In this document: positions 501 through 52,409 of the stretch, one piece after another
Layout: each line of letters starts with the position of its first letter
Numbering within the stretch: position 1 is the first letter of the stretch
Origin: Chlorokybus atmophyticus
Taxonomy: Eukaryota; Plantae; Mesostigma and Chlorokybus algae
NCBI GenBank assembly: GCA_009103225.1
Contig: RHPI01000401.1
Location: 1 to 64,000, forward strand
Direction: 5' to 3'
Length of the DNA: 64,000 bases
Notes under the pieces: generated by a model
What the model was told of the DNA's origin: nothing
Database searches by the model: none
The model's input: the letters and a program-made list of their open reading frames with translations, nothing else
Program-made: the position numbers and the translations under genes

Positions 501-658
501 TGAAATACACCAAGTCCCAAGTGCCATCGAACATTCAACACCACTTGACAAAACTGCCGATGTGAAATTACACCAAGTGCCAAGTGCCATTGAAAGTTCA
601 ACACCACTTGGCAAAACTGCCGCTGTGAAATTACACTAAGTCCCAAGTGCCATTGAAA
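501..658. repeat. Tandem repeat, about 63-bp unit, about 2.5 copies
   Basis: TGAAAT(T)ACAC(C/T)AAGT(C/G)CCAAGTGCCAT recurs three times about 62-63 bp apart. Confidence 0.85.
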
Positions 659-794
659 AGGCAAGCATGCTAATGGCATGCATTCCAAATTCTATTCTAT
701 TAAGCACAAAGTTAGCTTGGGCTACTATTACACAGCTGGCCAATGAACCTGTGCTTTTGACTACAATTTAGCTATGTACCAACCGCCTGCTACT

Positions 795-2665
795 TCACAT
801 CCGCCGTGACGTTTGCTGTGCTGGCATGCTGTCCATGAGTGTTCGCAGTCGTCTCCTTAAGCTGTCTGCCTCTTTTGGACGAAACCAATCCTTTTGCATC
901 TGCGTTGCACACACCCACACCATCTGGTTGCTCAACACATGTCAACCTACACGACTTTGCACTAAGGCAGCTGCCATATGGAGACATTCCAATGCATGAG
1001 CTGTACCTGCTGAAATATCGGGGCGTTTTGCTCAATCGGACTAGCTTGTATCCCATCTATAAACCTGTCAAGGTAAACAATGACAAACAGCCCGCACGCA
1101 ACTCCATCCCTCTGCTGAGGGACCTGCACGAACACGCTATGTCAATGCGGGCGAACCAAACGTATGTGCATCTACATAGGGATTGTGCTGGGAGAGGGCG
1201 TGACCTCATCACCAGGCCAAAACAACATGTCCTACCTGTGGATCAAGTAGCGGGACGTTTGCGGGAGAGAAGCGCTGTTGCGACTCACTTCCATGCTTCC
1301 TGCCCCACATATAGTTTAGATAAGCGCGCATTGGTCCGTCGACGTTGCGATGTAGACCAAGGGAGTCGAGATGGACGATCAAGGGCGGCGTGTTGCTTCC
1401 AAGTTCCCCTCCAGGATTGCACACCAGCAGCAGACTCCAGTGAGACCTGTGGCATGCAGACTTCAAAGTGAGTCCATGCGAGCAAGTACAGCAGCACTGC
1501 AGTGCGAGAACCTGGCTTCACTCTCACCGGCTGTCTGGGTTGACAATTGCTGCCAGCAAGTTCTTGGAAAACGGATCGTTCTCCCACCTATCTATCCTGT
1601 GATTGCCACTGTGCCAGTTATGTTGTTCATGGCAGTGCACAATTTTAGTGTAGAAGTGCGGGTTGAACAGCCTCACGTGAATGCCTTCAGCTCTGCCCAC
1701 GACCTCCTCTTCCTTATATCTGCGCGTGCGTGTCACATACATGACACAGCTGCACAACACCAACAACGCAAGGCTCATACCTGCAAAAGAAGTGGAGCAC
1801 GGTGTCGTTGAGCTCCTGTCTGCCGTCCAGCAACTTTCTGTCCGCTTCAAACACTGGCACCGCATCACGTGCATTTGCACTAGGGTAAATGAACAGGGGC
1901 ACAGGTGTTGACGCCTCAACTTCAGCACCCGGCCCGTCCAGCACCATGATGTCATCATCGCTGTCAACGAGGTCCACAACTGCTGCAGCCGTCGCGGTTC
2001 CTTGACTTGGGTGCTGGCGACGTTCCCCGTTGGCATCCTCATCATCAAGTTCCATCGGGACTGGCTCTGCAGCGTAAAAAGGTAGGATTATGCAATAAGC
2101 GCCGCAACGCAAACCAAGAAGCGCCGGCACGTTGCTGCTTACCACTCATATCCTCATCCCCGCACTCTTGAACAAAGCTTTTACCCACGCTTTCAGTCGG
2201 TGGTTGTGAAACCCAACCGCTGCTGCCCGGCAGAGAACGACGCGCGAGGCTATCCCTTGGAAGCTGTGCCGGAGCCCCACCTTCTTCGTACGCAGCGCAT
2301 TGCGAGCATGTGACCGAAAAGATGTTACCAACAGCATGACGTTGACAGAGGCTGTTTGGGCATGTCGCGCATACTTATCGAGCTGGTTCATTGCATCTGT
2401 GCACATGGCACCTGCGTTCCAGTGATCATTTTAGAACTTGTTGACTTCAGACACCATGCGTTCACTGGATACTGAAGCTTACTTGTGCCTTGGGCATTCC
2501 CAATGGTCATCTTCCACAGGTGGTACAGTGACGCAGCGTGCGTGGTAGCTCTTCCAGCAGCCTTCTGCATCACAGGCGAATATGCTACCGCCATCCTTGC
2601 AGACAAAGCAATAGTCTTCGTGTTCACGATTCTCCAATGCATCCAGCTCTAGCCCCGGTCTCATC
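795..2665 (-). pseudogene. PHD finger + C5HCH zinc finger + Ulp/SENP (peptidase C48) SUMO protease; one in-frame TAA
   Basis: Phase-compatible GT-AG exons give EDYCFVCKDGGSIFACDAEGCWKSYHARC...WECPRHKCHVHRCNEPAR*VCATCPNSLCQRH, then LFIYP...LNDTVLHFF, FNPHFYTK, SHWSLLLVCNPG, HLDSL, PQQRDGVACGLF and DWFRPKEADSLR. The His-Asp-Cys triad and oxyanion Gln are present. TAA at 2375-2377; final TGA at 795-797. Confidence 0.85.
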
Positions 2666-2919
2666 CTGCAAACCAAGGTCAGGTGCCCAGATCTGCAGTC
2701 ACACAACAGTAGGTATATGCAGCATCACAATAGCAAAGAGTACCTCATGTACTCAAAATGCCAGTCACGGCGTGTGGTTCACGACACCTCGCTCGAAGCA
2801 CTGTTTGTTTCGCTGTGGTCACCCTGCACCATGTGCATGTACACAAGATGGTTGTATGTGATGCCAAGACCCGGGAACTATGAGGACACCCAGATTCTCA
2901 CAAACAAATCTGCTCTCAC

Positions 2920-5900
2920 CGGAGTGAGTCGCGGTGCACACCTCGGCGCATGAGGCTTCGCCTGTCTTTGACAAGCGCTACTGTTATTTTGGTGTCATAC
3001 GGGTCAATACCCTCAAACCACTGGCCCTTGACCTGCCAGCAAGGACATGTATCACCCAATCTCACTCTACCATCAACTCGCAAAAACCGCTGCAACACAC
3101 CTACTTACTAGGTTGCAATCAAGGTAGGTTTGTTCTGCAAAGCGGGGCTTGTCTTTCCTCAGGATTGCAAAGCCTCCCATGTGCTGCACCTGGTTGCTCA
3201 TGTACCACCTCGCTCTGAGGAGCTGGTGCTCCCAACCGGCTACCACGACAACATCAAAAGACTGCACCCTGCCATACCAGTGGACCTTCTTGGTTGGGTC
3301 ATTTGAGTCACGCCCAACGGTAAACACTCCGCAGTCCATAGTGCGGAGCTTCTTCTCAGTGTCCTCCGCTCTGAACTGGCCAATGTCCTTGTAGCGCGCT
3401 CTGTAGTACCTCATAATGTACTTTGGAAACATGGGACCACTCAACAGCTCCATCTCGTGTTGAGTAAGCTCCCTATCAGGTCCACGCCAATGATGCAGCT
3501 CAGTCATGTGCTCCATGTCACTGGTCACGAGATTCCCTTGTGCTTGGGCCCTTTCGCGTGTCTTCCGCCGTTTTTGAACAGCCCGACTGAATTCTCTGTT
3601 TACCAACCCATTGTGGACTCATAATATGCAGGGGACATTGCGTACCAAACAACGATTGCTAAAGCAACTTACTCTTTTAGCTGCCTGTACTCATCGTCAT
3701 TTTCGGCCAACCACCACTCCAGCTCCTGCCTGATCTTGCTATCTTTCTCACACTCAACACGGTGTCTGCGCCCGCAGAGGACATAGTCATCATCATCTCG
3801 CTCCTTGCCCGATCGCAGACTGATGCCGACGAAAAGCCTCTTCAAGGTGTCCATGTAAGTGTTCAACATGAGCTGGATGGAGTATCTGCAGACATAACTT
3901 GCATTTAACACAAGTCAAAGAACGAGAGTACGAAACAGGTTGCATGCAACTTTTAGTTGGCCCAGACTTGCCTTTTGCAGATGCTTGCTTCCACATGCTG
4001 CCTGGCAAAAATCATGCGCTTCACCCACTGCATAAATCGTTCGTCGGCCCACTCCCAGTGATCACGCACCGGACCAAGCCACATGCATTGCTCTGGTAGA
4101 TGGCCAAGGAGGTGCAGCATCATTGTGAGCGAAGTCCGCGGGAAGAGCAGCTCCACCTCAGACTGTGCCTCATGCACCAGCACCTGCGATGAATAATGCA
4201 AGTCATGCAACCTGTAGAAGCTAAGCATACACATGGAAGGTATGGTTAAAGCCCTAACCTGCAGTTCTTCAAGGTGTGACTGCTTCACTTCCAATGCAGT
4301 CAGCCGCTGATAGATGTCGCAGAGTTTGAGGATTGTTTTCTTCTGATCTTCTCCAATGTCATGAGCAGAGCGCAGCACGTACTGGAAAATCACGGACCAC
4401 AAGTTGTGCTTGTCGTGCGATTTCATCGAGCCTGTGTGCTCACTACATCAGATTGTTAAGTAGACACAATGTGCAATGCAAGGACACTGAGTTGATTTGC
4501 ACGCAGTTGAGAACCATGGTGGTTGTCTCACCTAAATGCTTGGTGAAAGATTGCAGCTTAGAGCCGAAAGTGCTTGGAACCCTCACGCCTGAGAGTAATT
4601 GCTCAACCAGCCCTGCATCCGTGATTGCCCATGGAGCCTGAGGTTTGACCTTAACTGCAACTTCCTTTCCGTCTTTCGTCATCATCTCTGTCTGCAACGC
4701 ATCATCACAAAGTCACACGAGTTGGCAGGCAGTCATCACAAGTGTCGCATAAGCCTGCAATACCTGTAGCCAGAGTTCTGGCATACGACCTTGCTGCTGC
4801 AAATCTTCTCGACTCTCATTGCTGTCGCGCAATCCAGCAAGCAGATTGGCCAAATTGGTTGCGAGATTGGCAAGAATGTGCATAGGGCCAATCACATGAC
4901 CTTTTACAGATTTCTGTAAAGGCATCCAATAGGGAAGGTCGTGAAAACAGCTTAGGCCAAGGATTCCGGAGGACTTTGAAGGATGTTTCTTGGAGTGAAG
5001 TGGTCGCTTGCTGTTGCGGGATGTCATGGCGTACCTGATCACATGGCATCCATTGGTGAAGCTTGATTGACATAGCTACGTTCAGCTATGTCAATTGATT
5101 GGTTGCTCACCGGTACACACTTTCTGCAGTCCGCATGGGAGGTGGAGGTCTGTGTTCTGGTTGGGGCCAACGCTCATCAACTCGGTAGGAATGGTCATCT
5201 GGTAAGTACCGGCGGTAGCCTTGATAAATCACCTTTTTAAGGAGTTCCACATGTTCTCCACTGCACTCGCATTTGGAACAGCCAAAGATGGCTCCATGAG
5301 CCATCTGCATGGCTGCTTTTGCCAGAGCTGCGCAACCATCATTACATGTTTCAGAGAAGGCAAACATGGTTGCCATACCAGTCAGATAGTACATTCATAG
5401 ACACTGATGGCCAACACTTGCTGCTTGCGTACCTGGGTAATCATGGATTACAATCTCCAAGATAGATCTGCACCGGAAAACTTCGTCGCGGTGGCTGTCA
5501 TATATGTCGATGCCTACAACAAACACCAGCAGCTGAGATGCCCTACACATTCCAGTCCAGAGCAGTTTAAGAGCATGTTTGATGTATCGAGAGCTGGCTT
5601 GTTTAAACTACATTGAAACCACACCTTCCCAAAGGGTTCCCAACTGGTCAATGATTGGCTTGAGATAGGCCTGTAGATTCTCTGGCTGTTTGGGACCAGG
5701 TATCACCGCAGCTAGAAAGGTAGTGTCGGTCTTGTGCATTTTGGCAATGGGCAGGTTCAGCACAGAGATTGTGACAAGCCAAAATTCATAATTCCCTGCA
5801 AGTCCACACAAACACCTCGATCAATGCCAACTGTGAATTTACACACTGCAATGACAGCACAGGTAAAAGGCACAATCACTACCTTTATGCGGATCTTTGA

Positions 5901-7521
5901 AAGGGCTCATCCCGTCAATAAACATTGCCAGCCGCACATTACGCGGCTCTTTGATAAACCGGATGTAGCGTTCTTCTGTATGCTTGAACATTGGCGAGTC
6001 TGACAGCAGCAACCACATAAATAATAGTAAACATCTAAAAATTCAGGCTGCATTGGGCATCAACTTGTCAATCCACACTGCCATATACATACCGTGTATG
6101 GATCGTATAACCCCATCCTCACTGCGATTGGTGTGCGCTGTCATCTCCAAAGCGACACTAGGCTTTAGGTAAAGAGACCTCAGAGCAGCAGGCACGTCAA
6201 AGTAACGTGCAATCTTCCAAGGAACTTGTCGACCTCCAATGTTGCGGTGGCGAGGAGCCTTGCAGACTGCAGGCCATAGGAAGTTTGCATGCTGACAGGT
6301 GATCCCATGACAACTCAATCACACAAGAAATGCTACAATAGCTGACCTTTGCAGAATTTCCTGTTGGCATGTCGGCCATAATACACCATGTGGTCACAAC
6401 AACAGGCGTCATACGCGTGGAAGCCCATGTTGAGGCTTGCAAGGCATTTCAGTAGCTCTTGCATGCTGCCTGGCATCTGATTCTCCTTGGGCAAAACAAC
6501 ATCACGCACCAACCTGGCACACAAAGTCAAGTTCAATTGGAAATTAAACATTAATGTCTTTGCAGAATGTGTTTTGTATAATTTTGCAAACCTCTTATCC
6601 ACCAACCTTAGCAGTTTGTTCATGAAGTTGAAGGGTATTCGATGTAGCTGAGCGAGAACCAATAGCAGCATGGAAATGCCTAAAGGGGTTGTACGAGAGC
6701 CGGCAACAATAGGGTTGCTTGCATTGTCCAACAGCGCAGCATTCACCTTGTCAAGCAGCATTGCCTCGTCATCACCATGAGTGTCATACTGCTGCGACTC
6801 CACATCGGTATCGGAGTCTTGGTCTACGCCATCACCATCACCATCAACTTGCTCCGCATGTACTTGATTAGCGGTTGAGGGGGAGTGCGCTGGCAAATCA
6901 TGCTCGTGCGGAATTGTGTATTCTGGAGTTCTGGCACCTTGATGTCCTCGCGATACAGGATGCTCACCTTCAGAGAATGCTGGGTGCAATTCGCTCTGTT
7001 CCCCATGATCACACGGATGACATCCTGCCAACGCGAATAAATGCACTGGCACATGGACAATGACGTAAGCAATCAACTTGCAACTAAATTAGGTCGTACC
7101 TGCTGGGCGCATGTGATGTGCAACATTGACATGAGATGCCACACTCGTTTGCGATGGCGTGGCTGGGTGCAGTTGTTCAGCAGCGTAGTTCCATGCATGA
7201 AGTGTTTCGGTGTGATGGACAGCATCATCTGAAGCAGGCAAGCTTGGTAATCAGACAGCCTGTTGATGAAGTACACCAACTCAGGAAGATTACTCTTGTA
7301 CCTGACAGCATGTGCGAGGATGCAGCAGCAATAACAGCGTCAGCCTCTTCAAGTTCATCGGGTTCGAGAAGATTACGGTATTGCGGTTCAACAGCTTTAG
7401 GAGTGCCCATCCACATCCTTGTGCCATGGTACTCATGGTTTTTGGCCCTAGTGATGTGCTTGTGTGTGAACACTTTGCTCCCTTGGCAATCTTCGCAGAA
7501 ACACCTGCGATTGTAGCTCAT
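2920..7521 (-). CDS. CACTA/CMC DDE transposase (Transposase_21 + DUF4218 + DUF4216-like), about 16 exons
   Basis: Manual splicing gives a continuous frame: CKVC, EPRNVRLAMFIDGMSPF (D1), NLP...IPGPKQP...YLKPII, IHDYPA (D2), CSKC, RRYLPDDH, LPYW, PMH, MKSHDKH, HLLGH, WEWADERF (E), WYGRV...ARWY, GQWF..IDPYD. One intron (3971-3886) is GC-AG. The 3' end is uncertain and may continue into the PHD exon. Confidence 0.9.
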
Positions 7522-7809: not shown

Positions 7810-9482
7810 ATGCGCGGCGTCAAGGTGTGCAGTTTCTGCAGAGCATACTTGGTTAGAAACGGCAACTTGAAACGGCTGCAACAGCATGAAGAGAAGTGCA
7901 AGCTGTACAGTGAGCAGTATGGCTTCTATGAAGCCTGCTGGCACCATAAGGCCCGGGGAGATAACGTGAGGCAGTGCAGGCTTCTAGCAAAATGCATGAA
8001 GCCAGACTTCTTTGTCGAGGAATGCACTTGCCTGCAATGCTCGCTCTCCAAGTTTGAGTGGGACGGCGAGCCCATGGATCACCTGCCTTGGGCCCGGCCT
8101 GGAGCATATCAGGATGGGCAGGAGTGTGATGTGGTGCGACGTCAGCTCGCGCGCAACGGTCGCGGCAAGTCCACAGTCCAAGATGATCACAACAACAAAG
8201 TGAGTTGAACTGTCCTGTCCTGGCGCACAAACAGCGCTCTCATACGTAAGCAACTCACTCTTCAATGTTGAAGGGGAATGTAGCAGTAGTTGATGCAGTT
8301 GACGATACCGCGATAATAACCGCGTGGCGAAAGGAGATTGTTGATGAGGGGCAGTCTTTGGTAGCAAGCCGCGTCGTGGTATACTGGCTTGGAATGAGCA
8401 CCTGGTATGCAGGCCGCATCATCACTTTCAATGCCAACACAGGTACATGTGTCCAAATAATGCAGAGTATGTGATGTACGTGCGCGTGTTTACGCAAGCA
8501 CTGGCTCAGTAAAACATGTGGCTCAGGAAAACATACCATCAAGTACGACGATTACGATGAGGATCCGCGGCTGCACCACATCTTGTTGAAAAACTGGAAC
8601 ATCGCAGCTGTGCGTGAGGGTTACAACATGCAAGATGTCGTTGCAGTGATGGTTCGAGTTTGTGGTCAAAGCTGTCTGAGACTGCAAGACTTGCCTGGTC
8701 GCGAGCTCGATTATTGGCCCAGGCCACCACCCCTTCTCGTAACTCGCACACCATGCGACTCAAGCGGTAGACGTTACAGGCCACGCGCATTGGATCTCTT
8801 TTGTGGTGCCGGTGGCGTTGCTATGTGTCTGTATAGGGCTGGGTTTGATGTTGAGGGTATAGACATTAAGCCACAGCCGGCATACCCATTCAAGTTCTGC
8901 CAGATGAATGCAATGGACGCTGACCTGTCAGCATACAATGCAGTGTGGGCAAGTCCTCCATGCCAAGCTCTTAGTGGAGCCATTCCCACGACACAACGGT
9001 CCGCATACGGATATCGATGGGATCACGTCAACCTGATTGACCCCATAAGAGCCAAGTTGCAGTCGAGCGGCAAGGCATGGGTGATAGAGAATGTCGCAGG
9101 CGCGTCAGGACACATGACAACTCACCTGAAGCTGTGTGGCAGCATGTTCAAGTTGGATGTGTATCGCCATAGCATCTTCGAGACAAACCCTCTAGTGCGC
9201 TCAGACTTAGAATGCAACCACACTGGTTCTGCACTTGGAGAGCTGGCCACCCACCCGGAGCAGCGCCGGCAGTTGCTACCTGGGGAGAGGCAAATTTACC
9301 CGGTATACGGCCAAGCATCTTGCCGTGGTACGATTGCAGGGTGGCAGTCTGCCATGCAGGTGGAGTGGATGGATGCGGAATCGGAAATCAAGAATGCTAT
9401 TCCACCTACTTACTCTGAACATGTAGGCAGGCTGTTGCTGAAAGCGATAGGTTTCAATGTCGATTACCCTCCTTTTTACTGA
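7810..9482 (+). CDS. Cys-rich N-terminus + Tudor domain + phage/actinobacterial-type DNA (cytosine-5) methyltransferase; 3 exons, about 504 aa
   Basis: Exons 7810-8199, 8274-8442 and 8527-9482 join in frame. Tudor-like LVASRVVVYWLGMSTWYAGRIITFNANTGKHTIKYDD. MTase motifs: I DLFCGAGG, II GIDI, IV ASPPCQ, VI IENV, VIII CGSMF...YRHSIF, IX AMQVEWM, X NAIPPTYSEHVG. Confidence 0.9.
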
Positions 9483-9567: not shown

Positions 9568-12162
9568 TCACTGAGGTTGCCGCTGCTGCTGCTCTTTGTG
9601 CTCGCGCCGCTGCTTCCGCTGCTCCTTCTTTTGCTGGCACTGTTGCTTCCGCTGCTGCCGCTTCTGCTCACGCTCCTGAAAGAGTTGCTGCTTCAGCTGC
9701 TCCTGCTGCTCGAGTGTTGGCTGCTTGCCTATCACTGCTCGCTCACGCTCATGTTGACGTTTCTTAGCCAGTTTCTTGCTTTGCCGCCGATCATCAATGT
9801 GTTCACGTTTTTGCAACTTTAACATCTCCATGGAGTTTGCTTTGCGTGCGGAAAAATTCTCTCGATTGAGATGGTGCTTTTGCAAAGTCTCATTCAGCTC
9901 GTTTTCGTTTTGCTTGCAAGTGCGCACAAGCTCGTTGAACTGGTCATCCCGCCAATCCTGGTTCAAAGGACCCTTCGCAACGCAATTGCGCACTCCTTTC
10001 CTAAGCCCCTTGAGAAAAAGCTGTAGTTTGAGGGCATCATCCACCTGCAGCGCTGTCGCGTTGGCAACCATACACAGATGTTCGAACTGCGCGTGAAACT
10101 CCTCCACTTTGCGACCTGCCTGCCGCAGATGGCGCAGCTTCTTAAAAGCGCCGGCAGGGGTGTTGTCCATTTGCGAAGGAGCTCGGTTGCGAGTACGACG
10201 GCGTTTGCGCTTCTTGCTTGTGGTGGCACGACGAGGAACACCAGAGGAAAGACTACTGGTTGATGTGCCAGATTCATCAGAAGAGCTCTCATTGCCCTGC
10301 ATTGCATCAAGCTCGGTGCCACATTGCGCAACTCCACACTTGCTCTTGCACGCAGACAGCATGACAGTGCTCACCTGTCCATCAGCTGGGCTCATGGGTT
10401 CCGCCTGATTCTGGACTTCCACCTCAACCTCTTGGTTGACCTGTGCCTGCTTGGCCTTGGCCTCAGGCTGCTTCTCCCTGGCCTTGGCTTCAGCCAAAGT
10501 CTGCTCCTGCCTGGCCCTGGCTTCAGTCTCAGCCTGCTCTTGCCTGGCCCTGGCTTCAGTCTCAGCCTGCTCCTGCCTGGCCTTGGCTTCAGCATCAGCC
10601 TTGGTCTTCGCCTCGCCCGCCTGCCTGGCCTTGGCCTCAGCCTGCTCCTGCCTAGCCTTGGCCTGTGCTTGCTGCTTCAAGCTGGCCTCGACCTTCTTCA
10701 TGCACTCTGGACCCATCCTCAGCTTTGGCTTTTGGACCTTCGCGCTTGCCTGGGTCTCAACCTTGCCTTCTCCCTTGGCCTGGGCCTCAGCCTCTTGCAC
10801 ACACACAGCTTGCGACTGCACAGGGGGTCTACTTGAAGATGTAGGCGCCTGGAGTGGCGCCGATTTGGCACTGGGTGCTGATTGCGGAGGACCATCAGGG
10901 TACAGGCAGCGCAGGACTTCTGGTGGCATGTCACAGAGCTGCCATGAGAGCCTACCACTCGCATCGCCAAGAGACATGTAATGCGCGCATGCCTTGCTCC
11001 CGTCTGTATTGCCAATAATCACATGGCCAGCCACTTTCTGAACATCCTCGCCGATCAGCACCACAAGCTTGATACACTGCAGCTTTCCTTTGTCATCAGG
11101 TTTATAATACCTCCCGTCATCCCCTTTGCTGAGTACCCCCTTGTCCTCCGCTTATAGGATGTACTTGCAGTCACCAACCTCCTTGAGCTGCACGGTGCCA
11201 ATGCAAATGCCCAGTGTGTGCGCCAGCAGCGCCAATTGCAGTTGATCCGCATAAACACCCTCATGACTGATCACTTTCTTCAGAGCAACAACAGCTGCAT
11301 CACCTTCATCTTTTCCATCGAGAACCGTTGTTACCCGGAATTTCTTGGCGGCCTTCTTGTAGTCCTCGCCCATGTCACCAGAGGCCCCGTAGTTACGATA
11401 CGTCCGTAACCAACGAACGTTGACCTGGTCGGCACACATCTTGCGCAACTTGGCAGCTTGATCTCTCGTATGCAGCTCTTTGCCGTTGTCCAGCACGATG
11501 CTTCGCCAGAAAGCCTCGTTGTTGATTGCGCCCACGCGTTCCAGGCACGCAGCGTTGACGGGAGGGCGCGACTGGGCAATGCAAGAGTAGAAGCAGTTGC
11601 CATCAGCATAGGCGTCAAAGAGCCGCAGCTTTGTCTCATGCAGCAGCAGTCCAATCAGCTCCGCCTCATCGCCCGGTTGTGGAGGAGGTAGACCAGACTC
11701 CCAACGACCACCAGTAGATGCACGACCCGTTGATGTGCCCACTTCAGCTTCAGGTTCTCCGACAAAGTTCCCAAGGTCAATACTCGCAGCTGCTGCCTGC
11801 TTGTCACACAGCTTGCTGAGCTGCCGCCGCAAGAACTGATCCAACTTGACTCTCCATTCATGCGAGAGGGCGAGCAAATCAGCTTTCTCCAACCGCTGCT
11901 TGTATTTGACCACCAGCTCTTCCCATGTAGGGCAGTCTTCCTTTTCCTCTCTCCATACTTTTGCATAACCTACGCAAAGGGCCTTGAAATCATTGAAAAC
12001 CTCTTCGTCGGTCTTGTTTGCCCGGATCTGCGGCTTCTTCACCTCTTTTCCTGGTTGCAATGACCGGTATGAGCACGAGTTGGTGTGAGAAAGTTTACAC
12101 ATTCCAAGAGTACCTGCACGCTGCTGCTGACCACTTGGCAAGACCTTCTGCTTTGGTGCCAT
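9568..12162 (-). pseudogene. OTU deubiquitinase + repetitive coiled coil + retrotransposon Gag-like domain; one in-frame TAA
   Basis: The 364-aa and 498-aa ORFs are in the same frame, separated only by TAA at 11152-11154. OTU motifs AYADGNCFYSCIA, GVYADQLQLALLA and AHYMSL. Gag-like AFKKLRHLRQAGRKVEEFHAQFEHL...LFLKGLRKGVR. Confidence 0.8.
10440..10690 (-). repeat. Coding tandem repeat, 33-bp unit (about 11 aa, AETEARARQEQ-like)
   Basis: CTGCCTGGCC(C/T)TGGCTTCAG recurs with 33-bp spacing at about 10508, 10541 and 10574. Confidence 0.8.
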
Positions 12163-12247
12163 TATGAACAACCTGTGTCGACACACACAGAAAAACTTAC
12201 AAGCAGACACGAAATGATCAAGTGAGCCAAGTTTGGAACTGAGCAAG

Positions 12248-13372
12248 CAGGGACCTTACGCACGAGGCTGCCCCATGAGGTCAGCATGAACAGAGGCGTG
12301 AATTGACAACATGCAAGACAAGGTTTGCTTGAGGTCAGCATGAGCATGCAGGGGCCTTACGCACGAGGCTGCCCCATGAGGTCAGCATGAACAGAGGCGT
12401 GAATTGACGACATGCAAGACAAGGTTTGCTTGAGGTCAGCATGAGCATGCAGGGGCCTTACGCACGAGGCTGCCCCATGAGGTCAGCATAAACAGAGGCG
12501 TGAATTGACGACATGCTAGACAAGGTTTGCTTGAGGTCAGCATGAGCATGCAGGGGCCTTACGCACGAGGCTGCCCCATGAGGTCAGCATGAGCATGCAG
12601 GGGCCTTACGCACGAGGCTGCCCCATGAGGTCAGCATGAACAGAGGCGTGAATTGACAACATGCAAGACAAGGTTTGCTTGAGGTCAGCATGAGCATGCA
12701 GGGGCCTTACGCACGAGGCTGCCCAATGAGGTCAGCATGAACAGAGGCGTGGATTGACAACATGCAAGACAAGGTTTGCTTGAGGTCAGCATGAGCATGC
12801 AGGGGCCTTACGCACGAGGCTGCCCCATGAGGTCAGCATGAACAGAGGCGTGAATTGACAACATGCAAGACAAGGTTTGCTTGAGGTCAGCATGAGCATG
12901 CAGGGGCCTTACGCACGAGGCTGCCCCATGAGGTCAGCATGAGCATGCAGGGGCCTTACGCACGAGGCTGCCCCATGAGGTCAGCATGAACAGAGGCGTG
13001 AATTGACAACATGCAAGACAAGGTTTGCTTGAGGTCAGCATGAGCATGCAGGGGCCTTACGCACGAGGCTGCCCCATGAGGTCAGCATGAGCATGCAGGG
13101 GCCTTACGCACGAGGCTGCCCCATGAGGTCAGCATGAACAGAGGCGTGAATTGACAACATGCAAGACAAGGTTTGCTTGAGGTCAGCATGAGCATGCAGG
13201 GGCCTTACGCACGAGGCTGCCCCATGAGGTCAGCATGAGCATGCAGGGGCCTTACGCACGAGGCTGCCCCATGAGGTCAGCATGAACAGAGGCGTAAAAA
13301 CGACAACATGCAAGACAAAATTTGCTGCAATATAGCCTGAGCATGCAGGGGCCTTACGCACGAGGCTGCCCC
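12248..13372 (-). repeat. Tandem array of 101-bp and 47-bp units sharing one core; 14 cores
   Basis: CTTACGCACGAGGCTGCCCC starts at 12255, 12356, 12457, 12558, 12605, 12706, 12807, 12908, 12955, 13056, 13103, 13204, 13251 and 13353. Confidence 0.95.
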
Positions 13373-14378
13373 CTACGATCAGCATGAGCAAGAATGGGCC
13401 TTGAGAGCGGTCAGCAAAACAAGCGCAAACAAAGAGGAGCGCGGCATGCACTACACCTGGCTTGCGAATTCTTCAAACCCTACCAAGCTGCCTATGAAGC
13501 TGCAAGAGAGATCTACACAAAGCGGTTGGAGCACCGATGCGAAACGGCTTGCAGTACACCACCACAGCAACCACGCCGCCTCCCGCTCACACCGCCGCCA
13601 CCACCGGCCGCCGCCACCGCCGCCACAACCGCCGCCTCAAACCACGTCACGCAAAAAATGCTGCACTACTGCAGGTGCTCAACTCCAAACCCTACAACCG
13701 TGCACTATTCATTGAAGCAACCCTGTACCGCGCGGCAGGCGGCGCTGTACTGGGCAAGGGTCATTGAATGATGTATTGCAAATTGGGTGCAATCGATCCA
13801 TCTGTAAAAATGCATGTAGAGGGTATGAATTGCACCAGGTAGTCCTATATGCAGCAACCAGGTATAGGCCGTCACTATAGAACAACCACATGGAAACAAA
13901 GACAGTAGATGCACATGTGAAGGTTGTGTAATTTTGTGCGTGGTACAAGTGCACATACAATTCCAGCACTTGCACTAGACCAGCCCCCCTAGCTGTAGTT
14001 GTTGTGGTTGTGCCTGGTGTTGCTGGTTAATGTGACGGCTGGTGCACGGTGTGTGTTGATTGGGGGCGCCGTTATTTTCCTTAAACAATGTGGCGTGCAT
14101 ATGCGCATGCATTAGATATGTAACAGACTACGCATGTAAGCATGTTGCGTACAGAAAACGCAAGACATGCGTGTGATGGAGTACCCCGTATGCACAGACA
14201 GCAGCCGCTATAACAGCAGGTTCTCATTGCAGGCAGGCAGGAAGCACATGTATACAACGCCACTGGCCTATTGGAACTGGTCTTATGGCCCACTGATCGA
14301 GCAGCTAGGGGCCTACTGGAACCTCAACAGCAAGACATTGAAAGAGCAGCTATGTACAAGGTGAAAACTGCTGCTGAC

Positions 14379-26518: not shown

Positions 26519-26560
26519 TTAGGGTTAGGGTTAGGGTTAGGGTTAGGGTTAGGGTTAGTG
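26519..26560 (+). repeat. Interstitial telomere-type repeat (TTAGGG)6 followed by TTAGTG
   Basis: Six perfect TTAGGG units at 26519-26554 then TTAGTG. Confidence 0.95.
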
Positions 26561-27851: not shown

Positions 27852-29259
27852 CACACAGAGTCTCCACGGTGTTCAATCTTGTTACAGACTATTGTCTCAT
27901 TGGTTGCACGCAGCCAATGAGGGGTAAACAGCTGGCTGGGTATGTTGGGCACAATGGATTGCATTGATTGGAATGCGTTCCTCTGCGGTAGCATGCGCTA
28001 CAAGTCTGCCCCAGCTGCAACCCAGTTGGTGAAAGACTGTGAAATCGTACGGTGCTCAAGACAATGTGTCCGCACCGTCCAATTCACCAACACGCGGAAG
28101 TGTCAAGGCCGTCCACAACAAGCTGTTGGATCTAGCAACAGCTTGCGCTCGACCTCAATACATGTCAGATCATGATCGCGAAAACACCGGTGTATACAGT
28201 GTGAGGGAATCAGGGTGGGTGGGATACGACACTGTTCACACGCCGGTGCTTGCCGCCGCCTCCGCCGATAGCCTTAGCGACAGCCACATGGGTGGCGTGG
28301 CCATACGGCGGTTGTGGTCAACGTGTGCGCACAACGAGCTTGTGCGCACAAGGTGCTCAGCGATGGCTGGCGCACAAGGGGTGCGATACGGCAGGTAAGT
28401 CCTCTTCGGCATTAAATGTATGCCCAGAGCTAGCCAATTGCATAGCAACTCTGTATGAAAGAACACACAGAGTCTCCACGGTGTTCAATCTTGTTACAGA
28501 CTATTGTCTCATTGGTTGCACGCAGCCAACGAGGGGTAAACAGCTGGCTGGGTATGTTGGGCACAATGGATTGCATTGATTGGAATGCGTTCCTCTGCGG
28601 TAGCATGCGCTACAAGTCTGCCCAACTTCACTTACAGCTGCAACCCAGTTGGTGAAAGACTGTGAAATCGTACGGTGCTCAAGACAATGTGTCCGCACCG
28701 TCCAATTCACCAACACGCGGAAGTGTCAAGGCCGTCCACAACAAGCTGTTGGATCTAGCAACAGCTTGCGCTCGACCTCAATACATGTCAGATCATGATC
28801 GCGAAAACACCGGTGTATACAGTGTGAGGGAATCAGGGTGGGTGGGATACGACACTGTTCACACGCCGGTGCTTGCCGCCGCCTCCGCCGATAGCCTTAG
28901 CGACAGCCACATGGGTGGCGTGGCCATACGGCGGTTGTGGTCAACGTGTGCGCACAACGAGCTTGTGCGCACAAGGTGCTCAGCGATGGCTGGCGCACAA
29001 GGGGTGCGATACGGCAGGTAAGTCCTCTTCGGCATTAAATGTATGCCCAGAGCTAGCCAATTGCATAGCAACTCTGTATGAAAGAACACACAGAGTCTCC
29101 ACGGTGTTCAATCTTGTTACAGACTATTGTCTCATTGGTTGCACGCAGCCAACGAGGGGTAAACAGCTGGCTGGGTATGTTGGGCACAATGGATTGCATT
29201 GATTGGAATGCGTTCCTCTGCGGTAGCATGCGCTACAAGTCTGCCCAACTTCACTTACA
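27852..29259. repeat. Terminal repeat block of the YR retrotransposon, 612/623-bp period
   Basis: CACACAGAGTCTCC starts at 27852, 28464 and 29087; the first copy lacks 11 bp. Confidence 0.95.
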
Positions 29260-29277
29260 TGCTTTAACGCAGCAAGC

Positions 29278-30631: not shown

Positions 30632-32698
30632 GCTTGCCATTGAAGACGCCCGCGCACTGGCCAACTCACCACCTTAGGCCACCATGGCTTGTGCGGCCAT
30701 TTAGGCAACACCACCACCGCAGGCAGCCGAAAGAAGGATACTAAGCACTGCCTGCGACAGGAGACCCAACGGCGGCACCACCAACAGCAGAGGGTGATCC
30801 CCGGCGTGCTCCCGCCAGTTGATCGAGAGGGCATTACCCAAAGAGCCGGGCATGATCCACTGTGAGAAGTAAGCTGCAGCACGTGATGTCACATCGGAAG
30901 CAAACACGGCCAATGTGAAGATTCCAAACACCAACAACCTGTGATAATGCGCATCTGCTAGTGCCCAATCACCTGCATCCTCCAACTTGGACAACGCATC
31001 CTCGGCAGCTAAGCACTCCCGTGGTGCCCAATGAAGCTGAAGATGAACGTCCCGTGCCCACAACAGCTCCCACAACTCAAAAAGATGATGTCTCAACGGT
31101 AGCAAGCTAGTGGACAGAGTACTGAGGATAGACAGTGCTGGCTGACAATCACCTTCTAAGCATATGGTCACATGCTGTAGCTCTGACCTAGCACGCAGCA
31201 ACTCCATCACCAACAACATGTATGCCAATGCTTCCTTGCCCGATGGTGGCAACAACAGCTGATTACGGGTGAAGTTGCCCACCAACGGCCCCCATGGTGT
31301 GGTAGCACCCCATCCGCACACACCTGAAGCATCCGCACGCACCAAGCATGCCGTGGGTGGCTGCCACCATGCTCTGCCGTGGTACTTGCGCACATGCTGC
31401 AGCAACCACATCGCCAAGTCCACTGTGTGCGCAGCTGAGGGGTACTCAGCATCCCACGCACGGCCATAATCCACCAGCTGCATCAAAGAGCGTGCAAACA
31501 GCCGCACAGGTGGGAGCGCCAACCTGTAAGCCAACAACTTGCCTGCCACCTTCGCCAGCCATCTGTTCGAATGCTCGGTGGCCACACCCAACGCCTGCAA
31601 TTGCGCCTCCAAGGCGCGCAGCTTTGCCTCCGGAATTGCAAAGAGACCGATCTCAGTATCCACGATCAAGCCCAAGAACTTCAGCCGCAGCAGAGGCCAG
31701 GTGACGCACTTGGCAAGCCCAAAAAACCAACCAAGCGCAGCGAACAGGAGCATGACTGTGCGGATTCGCCACAACAAATGACGAAAGGAAGGATGAGCCA
31801 TGTGTATGTCATCGATGTAAGCCACAGTCCCTATGCCGGCCTCCCGCAGTGGCCTGTGCACCACCTGCTGAATTACAGTGAAGGCGTAGCAGGCCTGGTT
31901 GAGGCCGAAAGGCAGGACATTCCACCTAAAAAATCTGCCCCTATAAGCCATCGCCAAGTAACACCTGTCTGGCTTGCGCACAGGGACGTGGTGATAACCA
32001 CTCTTCATGTCGAATGTCGACTGGTATGCACCCACCCCCGTGTAGTGCAGAACATCAGTCAAGCGCTCGTAGTGAACAGGAATATGTTCTAAGTACAGGT
32101 TGACGTACCGCAGATCCATGATCAACCTAAGCTTGGGCTGATCGACAACACCAATGCCGGTCACAACGGTGACGTCCTCACGTCTCACCTCCTCCACCGC
32201 ACCTGTCTCTACCAGGTTGGCCAGCTCTGCACACACGAAGTCCTCATGCTGCAAGCTGGCATCGCGATTGGACAAGTGCAGTGGTGGTGGCAGATTCTGG
32301 GCCAGCATGGTGTCGACTTCGTACATGGCCAGACCCTCCTTCAGCAGAGTCTTTGTCACCTGGTCACGCTTGCGTGCTGCTGCTCCCGCGGTGCCAACGA
32401 AGCGGAGGGGGTAGCCATCCCGGAACCACTTGAGCACTCTGCGCGCCAGAGGGTTGCTAGTTGCTGCACACCACATGCGCGACGCCTCCATGTGCTGGCT
32501 CGGCATACCCGCCACAAATCTGCCCGCATCGTGCATGAATGCTGCCAGCATGGTATGCCACTCATGCTCATCAATAGCTGGCAGCTCCGGTTGATCCCCC
32601 ACCTGCTTCAAGTTGTCCAAACTTGCTGCACCTCGTGGGCTTGCCGTGCTACTAGCCAGGGCGCAGATGCCCGCACAGCTGGTAGCTGCCAGGGTTGG
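30610..32698 (-). CDS. DIRS-type reverse transcriptase - RNase H - degenerate N6-adenine MTase-like domain
   Basis: KLRLIMDLRYVN, DMKSGYHHV, LPFGL, YIDD; RNase H ADASG / EALA / GDCQ / EDALSK; MT-like DWAL...LAVFAS...VVPP. Frameshift near 30700 before PKWPHKPWWP. Confidence 0.92.
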
Positions 32699-33960: not shown

Positions 33961-34579
33961 CCGTTCCCAGTAGCCAGCACCGGACACTAGGCTAGGTACG
34001 CAGCTACGCAGCAGGCAGGCTACAAGCAGTTGCGGGTAGCGGCCCTGGCCGTCCACAACAAGCTGTTGGATCTAGCAACAACTTGCGCTCGACCTCGATA
34101 CATGTCAGATCATGATCGCGAAAACACCGGTGTATACAGTGTGAGGGAATCAGGGTGGGTGGGATACGACACTGTTCACACGCCGGTGCTTGCCGCCGCC
34201 TCCGCCGATAGCCTTAGCGACAGGCACATGGGTGGCGTGGCCATACGGCGGTTGTGGTCAACGTGTGCGCACAACGAGCTTGTGCGCACAAGGTGCTCAG
34301 CGATGGCTGGCGCACAAGGGGTGCGATACGGCAGGTAAGTCCTCTACGGCATTAAATGTATGCCCAGAGCTAGCCAATTGCATAGCAACTCTGTATAAAA
34401 GAACACCCCTGGTTGTAATTAATAGATTGCGTGCGGTTATTGGCTGCTGTGCGCAGTTTGACCCTGCTGTGCGCTGCCTCTCTTGCATCAATGTGTGTTT
34501 TGCATAAGCTCCACTAAACAGTCTATACATTCTCGGGTACCGGGTACTGGTAACAGAATATGTTTTAATTTCAGAAATT

Positions 34580-48000: not shown

Positions 48001-51000
48001 AAAGTTCTCCCACTCATCAGGGTAGATCTGCACGGCAGTCGTTGACAGCCCCCTAGTCAGCAAGGAGAGAGTGGAAACAACAGAAGAGAGACACACATCA
48101 AGCGACGCTATGGCAGCATGTGCTGCTGACCGTGCGCAGGTAGTACAGAAGAGAAACCCCATCGGAGTTCTCCTCCGTGATCTTCTGTTCTGAGTATATG
48201 ACATCCTCATCATAGTATGGCGTGAGAACAGAGAACGACCGCATGCACCTCACAGAAGGGGCAGCGGGCATTCTCATAAACAAGGATGCGGCGAAGAACT
48301 CAAGGCGGCGCTTGGCCTGCTTGTTGTTCAGCTTTCCGCGGTGGGTGCTGCTAAGAGTGAGGAGGAGCCTCAATCTCCTTGCCTTTGCAGACAGCAGTGA
48401 GATGGGATTGACCACCCCAGGCTGGGACTGAGGTAACCTGTTTGTTGCACCTGCGGGTGATGTCCGTCCACGTCGCTCAAGATATGTTTTGCGAAGGTCC
48501 TCCCGCATGAACCTGTTGATGGCCACGTCACAGACCTCCTCCAAAACGCGAGCAATCTCCACTCGCCCTCCAGGTTGGTCTTCAATCTGCTTGAGCAGGT
48601 CTGCCAACTTGTCAATTACAGGCCGCAGCCCCTGCATGTCAAAGCTTGTAAGCAGGGTCTTGGCTTCAATGGCTTCATGCACGTATGAGAGGATGGTGCT
48701 GAGCTCCACAGCTTCCTGCGTGAGACTTGGAGACTCCGCTAGCATCTTGATAGTACAAAAAGCCTCAAGCGCGGCAGATTTCTGGTGCTCTTGCGCACTG
48801 ACTTGCCTCCACGCAACTTCATCGCGGGACGCATACGGCATTCGCTGGGCATCACTAACGCGCAAGCTGTGGTCATGCCGTGCTGCTTCCTCCGGGTACT
48901 CCGCATCGCTGGCGAGGTCGATAGCGCTGTTGACATATCCGGCGAGCAAGAAGAGTGGCCAATGTACGAGTGAGGTCGCAACATCAGTGTCAGATGGTTG
49001 CTGGCCTGCTGCCGTATGCGTTGCCACGGTGTCTCCATGGCCTACAGGCATCTGCAAGCGCTCGAGCTCATCATCACTCACCAGGTCCTCCTCCCGCATG
49101 CTTTGCACAAGCTCATTCCAGCAGGAGGCAAAGAGATGGGCCTCCTGGACACTACTACTCCGGACCCCATCAAATGGAGCCTCGAGCTCAATTTCAGGGC
49201 CAGCCTCTTCCATGCCACGCTCCATTCGAGAGGTTGTTCGAGACACGGACCTCAAGCTTCTTCTCCGGAAACGGAGGCGCTTGATATTGAAGATGTTGAA
49301 CACCTTGTCAATGTAGCCTTGAAGCAGCTGCAACGGGTTTGTACCAACATGGTGATCAGTGGTCAACCCCAGCAAAAGCTTGCAAAACAGCGCCGGGAGC
49401 AGCCTGAAGCGCGAGGCGAGCACGCTCATCGTGGAAATTTCCCCTAGCCGCTGGTACAGCCCGCTGAAGCCACCAACAACCGAAGAGAATATGGCATACC
49501 ACACTTGCATGTCCATGATGTACACCAGCACAATCGGCGCCCTGCAACAGGAGAAATAGAGGGAGTGAGGGAGAGGGAGATGAACAGAGAGAGACAGGGA
49601 ACGAGGGCGCGCGCACAAGCGAGGGCGAGGGCCGTTGCAGCGCGCGCAGGCATTGGCGAGCATGGCCCGGCCCTGGCCCGNNNNNNNNNNNNNNNNNNNN
49701 NNNNNNNNNNNNNNNNNNNNNNNNNNNNNNNNNNNNNNNNNNNNNNNNNNNNNNNNNNNNNNNNNNNNNNNNNNNNNNNNNNNNNNNNNNNNNNNNNNNN
49801 NNNNNNNNNNNNNNNNNNNNNNNNNNNNNNNNNNNNNNNNNNNNNNNNNNNNNNNNNNNNNNNNNNNNNNNNNNNNNNNNNNNNNNNNNNNNNNNNNNNN
49901 NNNNNNNNNNNNNNNNNNNNNNNNNNNNNNNNNNNNNNNNNNNNNNNNNNNNNNNNNNNNNNNNNNNNNNNNNNNNNNNNNNNNNNNNNNNNNNNNNNNN
50001 NNNNNNNNNNNNNNNNNNNNNNNNNNNNNNNNNNNNNNNNNNNNNNNNNNNNNNNNNNNNNNNNNNNNNNNNNNNNNNNNNNNNNNNNNNNNNNNNNNNN
50101 NNNNNNNNNNNNNNNNNNNNNNNNNNNNNNNNNNNNNNNNNNNNNNNNNNNNNNNNNNNNNNNNNNNNNNNNNNNNNNNNNNNNNNNNNNNNNNNNNNGA
50201 GAGAGAGAGGAGGGGAGCGCCAGAGCGAGCGCGAGAGCGCACGCGCGAGGCTTTGCAAGTTGGCCAGCCTGGCATGTTTTTCGGACTGCACATTGTGCCA
50301 AAGCAGTACAAGCACTAGTGTGCCCAGGACATACCACAAGAAGAAAATGGCTCCGATGTTGTAGCAACCACGGACAGGTTTGAACCAGAAGTAATGGATC
50401 TCACAGTTTTTCCATAGGCTGAGCGTTGGATGCACAAGCGGCCTGACCTGGTTTGCATAGCGCCGTGAGGTTAACACAGGTCACAAAGTGAGCAATACAA
50501 TGACTAGAGGACAGGCGCTGCAAATGAACGTTGATGCGTCAGCGCAGCTGACTAGTTCTATCAAGTAGTATGGCACACAAGGATGTAGGGTGGGCTGGCT
50601 ACTATCTAGTAGTACAACGCTGAATGCCCTGCACATCAGCAAGAACGTACCTGCAAGTAGTAACTGAAAGTCAACTTGCACGCCAGTAACACCAACCAGA
50701 AGAGGGTGTACCAAGACGTTTGCCAGAGGGATTCCATCATGTTGCGCCCAACATAGACATGGGTGTCCGACCACCAAAAGAAGGGTAAAAAGATGTAGTA
50801 CAGGGGGTTATGCGGCCTACTGACGAGTTTGTTGATCAATGGGAGTACCCGGAGCAGGAACCTTGCAGTCGTGGGCCCAGCGTAACCCAATATGCACCAA
50901 AGAAAGATAACATCAAACTGAGTCCGCGTATGGGTCATCACCTGCAATCAAAGAAGGCGCTGAGCACTGTATAGCCAGAGACGCACAAGACACAACTGAT

Positions 51001-52409
51001 GTTGCTATGCAGTGCTTGATGTCCTCCCCACCAAGATGTATAACATGAGGAGAGCTGAAGCGCAAGCGAGATGCAGGACAGCGTGCGCAAATAGCCTGCA
51101 AAGCTCCAGCGCTCGCATGCGCTTCCATATCCCCCATGTAAATCGCAAGTTGAGCACCGCTTGTAGGAAGTTCGCAAATGCATATGTGACCACCAAGCTG
51201 CCCAGCATCCGCCACATGTGGTCCGTAAACAGGTGCTTCTCGTTAAAGGCAATGACAAACAGCGCTTGCAGCGACAAGATGTAACTGCATTGAACAGCGA
51301 CAGTAAATAAGTAGTCAACTTGTGAAAGCGGGACGCAAATGAGCAATATGTCTCGCAACTCACAAGCAGAAAAGGCGATGCCAACAGTGAAAAAGCGCCA
51401 GCCAGCTCCGTTTCTCCAAGAAAGTTTTGCGGGGCTTGCTCGAACTTAGCTGGAGAGTGCCATCAGCATCGCGCTTTGGCGGCCAGCAAACAATCTTGTC
51501 GTTTATGTCTACGCACTTCTTGGACCAGAAGTACTCATTGACGTCGTCATAGTTACACCAAGCTGTATGTGGCTTGAAGCCCAGGCTGCTGCGCCTGCTC
51601 GTCTCATTTGCACTGTCGGCCTCCTTGGCGCAGATGTTGTAGATAGGAGTCACCATGGTCTTCAGATACTCGTCGTCCCTGACCTCATTATCGCTCATGT
51701 TGGTGGACATCTCATGAAAGATGTAGCTGAGGCACTCGGGCAGAAAACGCAGATTGGCAGCTTCTCCCCAGATGAGGTAAAAGAGGCATGTGGATTGGAG
51801 GAGCTGCTTTTTCTGCTGCTCGGTCAAGAGATCCGTCTCGGGCACGCTCACCACGGGATCAAGCTTCAAGTAAGTGCACCAAGTGGTGTAGTTATTGAAG
51901 GTTTTGTTGGCCAGCTCTTTCAGAGCTCTGTTGAAGGCAGTGTCCTGGCGCTGGCCGCCTCTGGTTTCGGCGCGCTTGAGTTTGTTGGCAAGGAGCAAGA
52001 CCACATTTTCACGTTGATTCTTTACATTGTCTGCCTGGAAGCCACACACGCACTTCAACCAGTCGAATACGTCCTCCTTGTTTCCAGTCAGGCGCTGCTT
52101 AACATTAGCGACTCGAGATCGAGACGTCCTTGAGTCGTTGCGCTGGCGGATGATGATGAGGCCTTCTGCCTGCGTCCTCAACTCTTCGCGCACCGCCCGT
52201 ACCTCTGGCAGCGTGGCAGCCAGATTTCTGCCTTCCAAAGGCATCACGTTGTATACGTGTCCCTGGGACATTGTGTGTGAGGCGGTGTACATATGCATGT
52301 GCGCGTCTGCACGTGCCTGTGAGCACTATGCGTGCCTATGTGGGTGGAGCAATGTTCTCACACGTACCTGCGCAGTGCCAGGCGCAGTGGACGGCCCAGC
52401 CTCAGCCAT
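45030..52409 (-). CDS. GSL: Callose synthase / 1,3-beta-glucan synthase (GT48)
   Basis: YNVMPL, NVKNQRENVVLLLAN, IWGEAANLRFLPEC, NYDDVNEYFW, RRLEFFAASLFM, FSVLTPYY, IYPDEWENF, WASYRGQTLART, KFTYVVSCQIYG, GEGKPENQNH, IDMNQD, HYGHPD, NLSEDIFAG, GKGRDVG, NQAFSRG; about ten or more GT-AG introns. Start ATG inferred (MAEAGPSTAPGTAQ). Confidence 0.97.
49681..50198. other. Assembly gap inside a callose synthase intron
   Basis: Run of N flanked by GC-rich and GA-rich simple repeats. Confidence 1.

Follow-up and report, generated by a model that had tools for sequence, protein, structure and literature searches.

A phage-type cytosine methyltransferase domain joined to a Tudor domain in a predicted algal gene, probably CACTA transposon cargo and probably crippled in its catalysis

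Methylases that are associated with transposable elements or have been acquired horizontally, and that are joined to chromatin readers, are already known. Retrotransposons encode DNMTs in the form of SymbioLINE-DNMT, SymbioDIRS-Dnmt3 and the Klebsormidium Gypsy/Copia-DNMT3 elements (de Mendoza et al. 2018, PMC5890265), and the EpiLTRs likewise carry retrotransposon-encoded DNMTs (bioRxiv 10.64898/2026.05.21.726589). In bdelloid rotifers, a bacterial N4-methylcytosine (4mC) methyltransferase is fused to a chromodomain as N4CMT, according to the account cited in PMC12344493 (Rodriguez et al. 2022, PMC8885841). Orphan eukaryotic DNMTs derived by lateral gene transfer fall outside DNMT1/3/5, some of them being related to giant-virus (Pithovirus) enzymes; they are generally found without companion domains, and the green-algal ChloroDNMTs often carry a PWWP reader (PMC12344493). 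Fungal DNA transposons with TET/JBP enzymes are also known. Here, we have analysed a 64-kb stretch of DNA (positions 1 to 64,000 of contig RHPI01000401.1, assembly GCA_009103225.1, Chlorokybus atmophyticus; hereafter the window) which holds a predicted three-exon gene joining a compact, phage-type C5-cytosine methyltransferase (MTase) domain to a Tudor domain, next to a CACTA transposase gene. It is this pairing of a phage-type C5-MTase with a Tudor domain that is new: neither such a fusion nor such an MTase beside a CACTA transposase is reported in the literature that we searched, in keeping with the suggestion of a preliminary description of this DNA that the combination may be undescribed.

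The locus shares with the retrotransposon DNMTs and the EpiLTRs the pairing of a mobile element with a cytosine methyltransferase, which in those elements is sometimes accompanied by a chromodomain reader. Their methyltransferases are host-derived DNMT3 or DNMT4-like domains within a pol/ORF1 polyprotein (PMC5890265; bioRxiv 10.64898/2026.05.21.726589), whereas the window MTase has a CACTA DNA transposase next to it, is of phage/bacterial type with a gene of its own and is joined to a Tudor domain as its reader. With rotifer N4CMT, as it appears in the cited account, and with a Marchantia 4mC methyltransferase, the likeness lies in an apparently acquired prokaryotic DNA methyltransferase that has been given a eukaryotic histone reader; on the same account N4CMT is a writer of N4-methylcytosine with a chromodomain, encoded by a host gene that silences transposons, whereas the window protein is of the C5 type, carries a Tudor domain and is encoded beside a transposase. 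The orphan DNMTs share the giant-virus link, since Pithovirus LCPAC201 (P0028) is among the matches of the window protein; orphan DNMTs and ChloroDNMTs are set apart from it here by their published descriptions. The nearest stand-alone counterparts are the compact orphan MTases of actinobacteriophages and prophages in PHROG_363 (for example Mycobacterium phage Ariel gp117, Gordonia phage Kamaru gp76 and a Streptomyces plasmid 'DNA methylase'), which have the same domain of ~220 residues throughout at 38-42% identity, an unchanged order of motifs I, IV, VI, VIII and X and the very short variable region of this compact family. Those phage proteins stand alone, are intronless and usually have ~65% GC, whereas the window protein has a eukaryotic N-terminal extension of 265 residues that includes the Tudor domain, two introns, a host-like composition and a serine at position 402. 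Overall, we consider it probable that this is a chimeric eukaryotic gene in which a horizontally acquired phage-type C5-MTase has been combined with a Tudor domain, that it is most likely cargo of a CACTA element, and that the window copy is probably catalytically crippled.

Judged by its motifs and its relatives, the window MTase, which makes up the C-terminal 235 residues of the protein, is a member of a compact phage/bacterial C5-MTase family and not of DNMT1, DNMT3, CMT or DRM. Motif I, which binds S-adenosylmethionine (SAM; FxGxG), is present as DLFCGAGG (residues 276-283), followed by ASPPCQ (328-333), IENV (373-376), LCGSMF (389-394), AMQVEWM (462-468) and AIPP (477-480). In a 52-sequence alignment the invariant residues D276, C279, G282, G283, S329, P330, the catalytic C332, E374 and R400 are all kept; these include the D, C, G and G columns of motif I, and motif IV (S329-P-P-C332-Q) and motif VI (I-E374-N-V) lie wholly at invariant columns. 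Across the whole protein, Pfam and NCBIfam gave sub-threshold matches only, with the DNA_methylase model scoring the MTase at 5e-4, under its curated cut-off, because the family is too divergent for PF00145; PHROG_363 ("DNA methyltransferase") matches the MTase half at 1.9e-23. A search of 5.8 billion proteins returned 77 matches, every one confined to the MTase half (~44% of the query, at its C-terminus). Most are metagenome proteins of 280-300 residues at 35-42% identity, named matches include the actinobacterium Rugosimonospora besides the Pithovirus, and no vertically inherited eukaryotic DNMT (DNMT1/MET1, DNMT3, DRM or CMT) is among the 77. Against annotated phages, tblastn found 324 records at 38-40% identity (E to about 1e-40, over 95% of the domain), 303 of which span at least 80% of the MTase domain; by host, 190 belong to Mycobacterium, 52 to Streptomyces, 28 to Paenibacillus, 22 to Arthrobacter and 19 to Gordonia, and the majority of the listed matching genes are annotated as DNA methyltransferase or methylase. 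The family also occurs on 14 plasmids, mostly of Streptomyces, on 69 IMG/VR contigs and at no fewer than 401 bacterial genome loci in the Actinomycetota, Acidobacteriota, Planctomycetota, Chloroflexota, Proteobacteria and Cyanobacteria. The genomic contexts of the relatives P0004, P0046 and P0052 were phage-like or uninformative, and a metagenome scan found no close relatives of exon 3.

Structural comparison gave a similar picture. Searched against solved structures, the family profile matched bacterial 3g7u at 4e-11, M.HaeIII at 9e-8, DNMT2 at 3e-6, DNMT1 at ~5e-5 and M.HhaI at 3e-3, with no DNMT3, DRM or CMT chain among the best 60 matches. An AlphaFold model built with the family alignment reached a predicted local distance difference test (pLDDT) of 85-98 for residues 270-500, and Foldseek assigned it the C5-MTase fold, the top matches being the catalytic domains of DNMT1 and DNMT3A/B (E ~1e-7 to 1e-8, ~14% identity). 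Pfam detected none of the companion domains BAH/RFTS, PWWP/ADD, UBA or a chromodomain insertion in the window protein. In a neighbour-joining tree with a canonical MTase domain as its root, the window MTase falls inside a star-like family, where its sole supported partner is P0001 (73% bootstrap). We infer a horizontal origin for the MTase domain from these sequence comparisons. The gene has GC and GC3 (GC at third codon positions) values of 0.53 each, like the neighbouring eukaryotic genes, and this host-like composition argues for an integrated, compositionally adapted gene and not for contamination. The preliminary description had recognised a phage-type layout distinct from DNMT1, CMT and DRM, and this holds, with DNMT1 matching only at ~5e-5; its narrower label of a short actinobacterial or phage enzyme had the type right, but the family spans many bacterial phyla. 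The search and phylogeny that it had proposed place the MTase within the phage/bacterial family.

The three exons join in frame to give 1515 nt and 504 codons, ending in the TGA at 9480-9482, and reading through either intron leads to an early in-frame stop. Intron 2 falls between T186 and K188 within the Tudor domain, and the alignments of this domain to PDB entry 7de9 and to the PF21743 protein P0259 run unbroken across the exon 2/exon 3 junction, which supports this predicted splice. Furthermore, the second half of the Tudor domain (KHTIKYDDYDED) shares exon 3 and its reading frame with the MTase; the fusion is therefore independent of any guessed splice and can be seen directly in the DNA. 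For intron 1, the acceptor at 8274 is the sole in-frame acceptor nearby, and a shorter protein could instead begin at an ATG at 8265. The N-terminal 130 residues contain 10 Cys and 5 His, arranged in part as C7-x2-C10-x15-H26-x3-C30 with more Cys beyond, and in the AlphaFold2 model a pLDDT of ~80 is confined to residues 10-30 of this region. There is no second copy of the gene within the window. All of the catalytic motifs previously quoted as lying in a single intronless exon are indeed found in one frame of exon 3. The accompanying claim, that two introns connect this exon to a Tudor domain and a Cys/His-rich N-terminus, is borne out for the Tudor domain, half of which is in the MTase exon, and for exon 1 it follows splice consensus and frame.

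Identification of the Tudor domain is carried by several lines of evidence. The best solved-structure match of the whole protein is 7de9 (E 1.3e-4, residues 155-199), which is the Tudor domain of Arabidopsis RDM15/PDS5C bound to H3K4me1; RDM15 reads this mark and is linked to RNA-directed DNA methylation (PMC8184781). An exhaustive phmmer search with residues 1-266 against 1.84 billion representatives gave 200 matches, 34 of them below 1e-10, and nearly all fall in residues ~155-200, often as many repeats per protein. All ten of the matches that we scanned were PF21743 (PTM/DIR17-like Tudor) proteins, some with a bromodomain, PWWP or RAMA, and P0259 itself shows 41% identity in BLASTP (2e-17), including the 'RLHH' tail after the domain. 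The Tudor domain of the preliminary description is thus upheld, and it is probably of the PTM/DIR17 type. In RDM15, W616, Y623 and Y641 form an aromatic cage and the monomethyl-ammonium group is coordinated by D643 and D645 (PMC8184781). All five residues of this methyl-lysine pocket are kept in the window protein, as W168, Y175, Y193, D195 and D197, and H3K4me1-like binding is therefore a reasonable prediction for this domain. The W, Y, Y cage and two aspartates are shared, but RDM15 lacks a catalytic domain and brings in the methylation machinery by an indirect route, and where RDM15 has E647 the window protein has an Asp.

The MTase domain carries one striking deviation. At motif VIII the window protein reads R-H-S where 51 of the 51 homologues read R-H-R, and position 402 is the sole exception among the invariant residues of the 52-sequence alignment. 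The local alignment has no gaps and leaves no ambiguity (LCGSMFKLDVYRHSIFE in the window protein, LCGTMFDLRVFRHRLFE in P0001), and the family profile aligns RHR with the 'RTR' of PDB 3g7u ('RTRYF'), which identifies position 402 as the second Arg of the motif. Motif VIII of the C5-MTase superfamily has two arginines; here R400 is present and residue 402 is Ser. The second Arg hydrogen-bonds the O2 of the flipped cytosine. Its loss in M.HhaI (R165A) slows catalysis about 10^5-fold, and the corresponding mutants of M.SssI and Dnmt3a have hardly any activity left, marking the residue as essential (PMC4802922). Given the loss of an invariant Arg and the R165A precedent, the S402 copy may be inactive. 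A single nucleotide change, CGC to AGC, suffices to produce Ser402, and the simplest reading would be a recent inactivating change in one copy. The preliminary description had proposed that methylation could be guided by chromatin marks; a Tudor reader is indeed fused to the MTase, but a serine at the second Arg of motif VIII makes chromatin-guided methylation by the window copy doubtful.

The closest relative of the window MTase is P0001 (233 bits), a 320-residue protein from Logan assembly SRR24908243. Both proteins have a 'VDYPP' C-terminal tail and each is joined to a eukaryote-type chromatin reader, but in P0001 the reader is a methyl-CpG-binding domain (MBD) inside the variable region rather than an N-terminal Tudor domain, and motif VIII is intact (RHR). 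The contig is compact and GC-rich, and on it the P0001 gene follows a 2OG-Fe(II) oxygenase gene after 64 bp. Scanning viral contigs with P0001 recovered ordinary phage-like relatives only, and no MBD- or Tudor-bearing versions. Taken together, the Tudor domain in the window protein and the MBD in P0001 suggest at least two independent pairings of the compact MTase family with a chromatin reader.

The MTase gene is flanked on both sides by genes of transposon type (Table 1). The CACTA transposase gene is divergent from it, with 730 bp between the two, and its Transposase_21 matches extend over three consecutive open reading frame (ORF) pieces covering profile positions 8-207, followed by DUF4218. 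On the other side, a 498-residue ORF is convergent with the MTase gene, with 86 bp between the stops; it may be an accessory gene of the element that encodes a TnpA-like protein. The OTU-like ORF beyond it is possibly a passenger gene, and a 101-bp repeat array that overlaps the 5' end of this ORF may represent subterminal repeats, although the repeat motif was not found in inverted orientation on the left side or elsewhere in the window. Plant DNA transposons often capture protease and reader domains of the Ulp1/C48-, PHD- and OTU-like kinds.

The course of events that we favour would begin with the horizontal acquisition, by a green-lineage and probably streptophyte alga, of a compact C5-MTase of the kind found in bacteriophages and prophage-rich bacteria. 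The acquired MTase would have taken on the base composition of its host and been fused to exons for the Cys/His-rich N-terminus and the PTM/DIR17-type Tudor domain. In an intact copy, the protein would be brought by its Tudor domain to nucleosomes with a lysine mark of low methylation (H3K4me1-like), where the MTase would then write 5-methylcytosine (5mC) on nearby DNA. Divergent from a CACTA (TNP2) transposase that seems to be intact, and surrounded by PHD, Ulp1-like, OTU-like and gag-like passengers, the gene would be carried as cargo of a large element, of which the window holds a recently mutated copy predicted to have little or no catalysis (S402), and not a working enzyme. En/Spm (CACTA) activity is classically governed by methylation of the element's own control regions, and a methylase cargo could tune the epigenetic state of the CACTA element itself or of its host.

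That the MTase gene is cargo of a large CACTA DNA transposon is, given its adjacency to the transposase, the most likely arrangement, but the evidence for it needs careful interpretation, as does that for the gene itself, and several observations weigh against the account given above. We searched for termini using inverted-repeat scans at two stringencies, all CACTAC sites and a pairwise CACT[AG] scan for terminal inverted repeats (TIRs), and no convincing pair of CACTA...TAGTG TIRs with a 3-bp target-site duplication (TSD) surrounds the MTase gene in the window, although the element may extend beyond the left edge of the window. A search with the reverse complement of a possible CACTAC end at position 47 gave no terminus either. 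The gene could be a host gene between transposon fragments that is not mobilised by CACTA, such as an orphan DNMT that was acquired horizontally and domesticated, or a relative of the PWWP-bearing algal ChloroDNMTs; we think this unlikely on balance. It would be consistent with the lack of TIRs, TSD or a second copy in the window, with a neighbourhood so rich in transposons that adjacency is weak evidence, and with the documented occurrence in eukaryotes of orphan DNMTs derived by lateral transfer and of reader-bearing algal DNMTs (PMC12344493). The tight packing with genes of transposon type on either side argues the other way, as does the loss of an invariant catalytic Arg, which would be expected of a transposon copy that decays neutrally more than of an enzyme that the host maintains, and an orthologue was absent from the protein collections searched. 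The earlier placement of the gene inside a DNA transposon is accordingly supported in part, by a TNP2 transposase at close range on the other strand, and not by element ends or further copies. As to the gene itself, the predicted fusion and both splice junctions are read here from genomic DNA, and the exon 1/exon 2 junction is placed by splice consensus and frame. Searches of Pfam, a word-indexed search with residues 1-266 and the exhaustive phmmer search with the same residues gave no homologue of exon 1. Direct Pfam matches to the Tudor domain were weak (53-BP1_Tudor 0.008; PTM_DIR17_Tudor 0.03), the direct PF21743 match of 14.4 bits being below the cut-off of 27.2, and a single-sequence AlphaFold2 model of the Tudor region had a pLDDT of 45; the single-sequence models of the N-terminus and Tudor domain are unreliable. 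The star-like tree does not resolve the donor lineage. The assignment of a 'DNA C5-cytosine' activity draws on motifs and fold, and the literature searched contains no member of the compact family with a characterised substrate.

Ser402 itself can be read in more than one way. Of 46 highly conserved columns, the window MTase deviates at three, the median for the family being two; as the domain is otherwise not unusually degenerate, S402 could be tolerated or could be an assembly error, which also counts against a crippled enzyme. Alternatively, the protein might be a non-catalytic, DNMT3L-like chromatin factor, in which the MTase fold binds DNA, SAM or a partner, the Tudor domain reads histones and S402 is adaptive. 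Inactive MTase paralogues acting as histone-reading cofactors have precedents such as DNMT3L, and the one invariant residue that has changed is catalytic, in a fold that is otherwise well kept. However, the catalytic Cys332, ENV, R400 and the SAM-binding motif I are intact, unlike in typical pseudo-enzymes, one nucleotide change explains the serine, and Ser is known from one copy; we judge such a role improbable. An artefact, whether bacterial or phage contamination or an assembly chimera of a prokaryotic MTase with eukaryotic DNA, would account for the close relatives of the MTase domain all being prokaryotic or viral, but it is extremely improbable. One exon and one uninterrupted frame hold both the MTase and half of a eukaryotic Tudor domain, composition does not change abruptly at the junction, the GC of 0.53 is like that of the neighbours, and prokaryotic sequences match at only about 40% identity; contamination was rejected on these grounds. 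We infer, then, a loss of activity in the S402 copy of what is probably a transposon-borne chimeric gene.

Table 1. Coordinates of the MTase gene, its domains and its neighbours in the window, and of the P0001 gene
Feature	Coordinates	Strand	Remarks
Exon 1	7810..8199	+	Residues 1-130, Cys/His-rich N-terminus; basis: ORF and perfect donor AAA|GTGAGT
Intron 1	8200..8273	+	74 nt, GT..AG, AAA|gtgagt...ttgaag|GGG; if retained, immediate in-frame stop
Exon 2	8274..8442	+	Residues 131-186, linker and first Tudor half, cage residues W168 and Y175
Intron 2	8443..8526	+	84 nt, GT..AG, CAG|gtacat...ctcag|GAA; interrupts Tudor domain
Exon 3	8527..9482	+	Second Tudor half (Y193, D195, D197), linker, whole C5-MTase (residues ~270-504), stop
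Tudor domain, probably PTM/DIR17-type	8346..8579	+	Residues ~155-204, span includes intron 2; 7de9, phmmer, PF21743 and P0259 matches
Compact phage/bacterial-type C5-cytosine MTase domain (predicted)	8775..9479	+	Motif I 8793-8816, catalytic Cys332 codon 8961-8963, ENV 9087-9095
Ser402 codon AGC	9171..9173	+	Second Arg of motif VIII (QxRxR), M.HhaI R165 equivalent; Arg in 51/51 homologues
CACTA/EnSpm-type transposase gene	2479..7076	-	Multi-exon; Transposase_21/TNP2 5107-6018, DUF4218 3953-4426, PHD finger 2479-2706
Ulp1/C48 protease-like ORF fragment	1209..1466	-	Downstream of transposase; weak, E 1e-3, just below Pfam cut-off
498-residue coiled-coil ORF	9568..11064	-	Weak Retrotrans_gag match 1.8e-4; K/E/A/Q-rich 11-residue repeats
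OTU-like cysteine protease ORF	11152..12246	-	DGNCFYSC motif; weak Pfam match, E 0.045
101-bp repeat array	12139..13402	.	Alternating 47/54-bp sub-units, motif GAGGTCAGCATGA x 22; ~1.2 kb
P0001 gene	L001 (SRR24908243 contig, 1650 bp) 606-1568		MBD PF01429, 34.9 bits, at residues 195-249

Elsewhere in the window, an interstitial telomere-like repeat of ~6.5 TTAGGG units (26519-26558) borders an AT-rich block (26-28 kb, GC 0.40). Tandem units of 612-623 bp with 98-99% identity occupy 27852-29263, and a further 360-bp copy is found 5 kb away at 34047-34406. A retroelement ORF of 639 residues (30701-32620, minus strand; RVT_1 1.6e-13) is unrelated to the MTase gene. Two direct repeats of 776 bp, 100% identical and 5.2 kb apart (36960-37735 and 42128-42903), are a candidate long terminal repeat pair of a very young element of ~5.9 kb. 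A callose synthase (GT48) gene of several exons lies at 45905-52298 on the minus strand (Glucan_synthase 2e-123, FKS1_dom1 6.5e-29), its product being only 55-60% identical to land-plant enzymes, which are its best matches. This level of identity is the chief indication from the sequence that the host belongs to the green lineage outside the land plants, and suggests a streptophyte alga. Rfam gave no match in the window.

Going beyond the single copy, one could picture an active CACTA family in a streptophyte alga with a reader-guided de novo methylase of its own, in which a phage-derived C5-MTase is combined with an H3K4me1-type Tudor domain, such that the element and not the host writes 5mC where chromatin is in a defined state. 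This is a speculative proposal, which we think rather unlikely to be correct. If true, it would represent an independent reinvention of the 'histone reader plus DNMT' logic of DNMT3-PWWP/ADD and CMT-chromodomain proteins and, together with P0001, it would define a clade of phage-type methylases, belonging to eukaryotes or to their viruses, in which chromatin readers have been recruited repeatedly.

If the S402 copy is dead, the locus serves mainly as a pointer to intact copies in the source genome. The conserved RDM15-type pocket nevertheless yields a concrete and testable prediction, namely H3K4me1-like binding, and the MBD-bearing sister P0001 suggests that chromatin readers have been given to this MTase family more than once. 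Cytosine methylation is usually viewed as a weapon of the host against transposons. Exceptions are known in the retrotransposons with captured host DNMT3-like domains and in bacterial methylases domesticated by their hosts, as in rotifer N4CMT-chromodomain. If our interpretation is correct, a DNA transposon with a phage-type C5 methylase and a histone reader would be a third route, and exon fusion would easily wire a minimal prokaryotic enzyme to eukaryotic chromatin.

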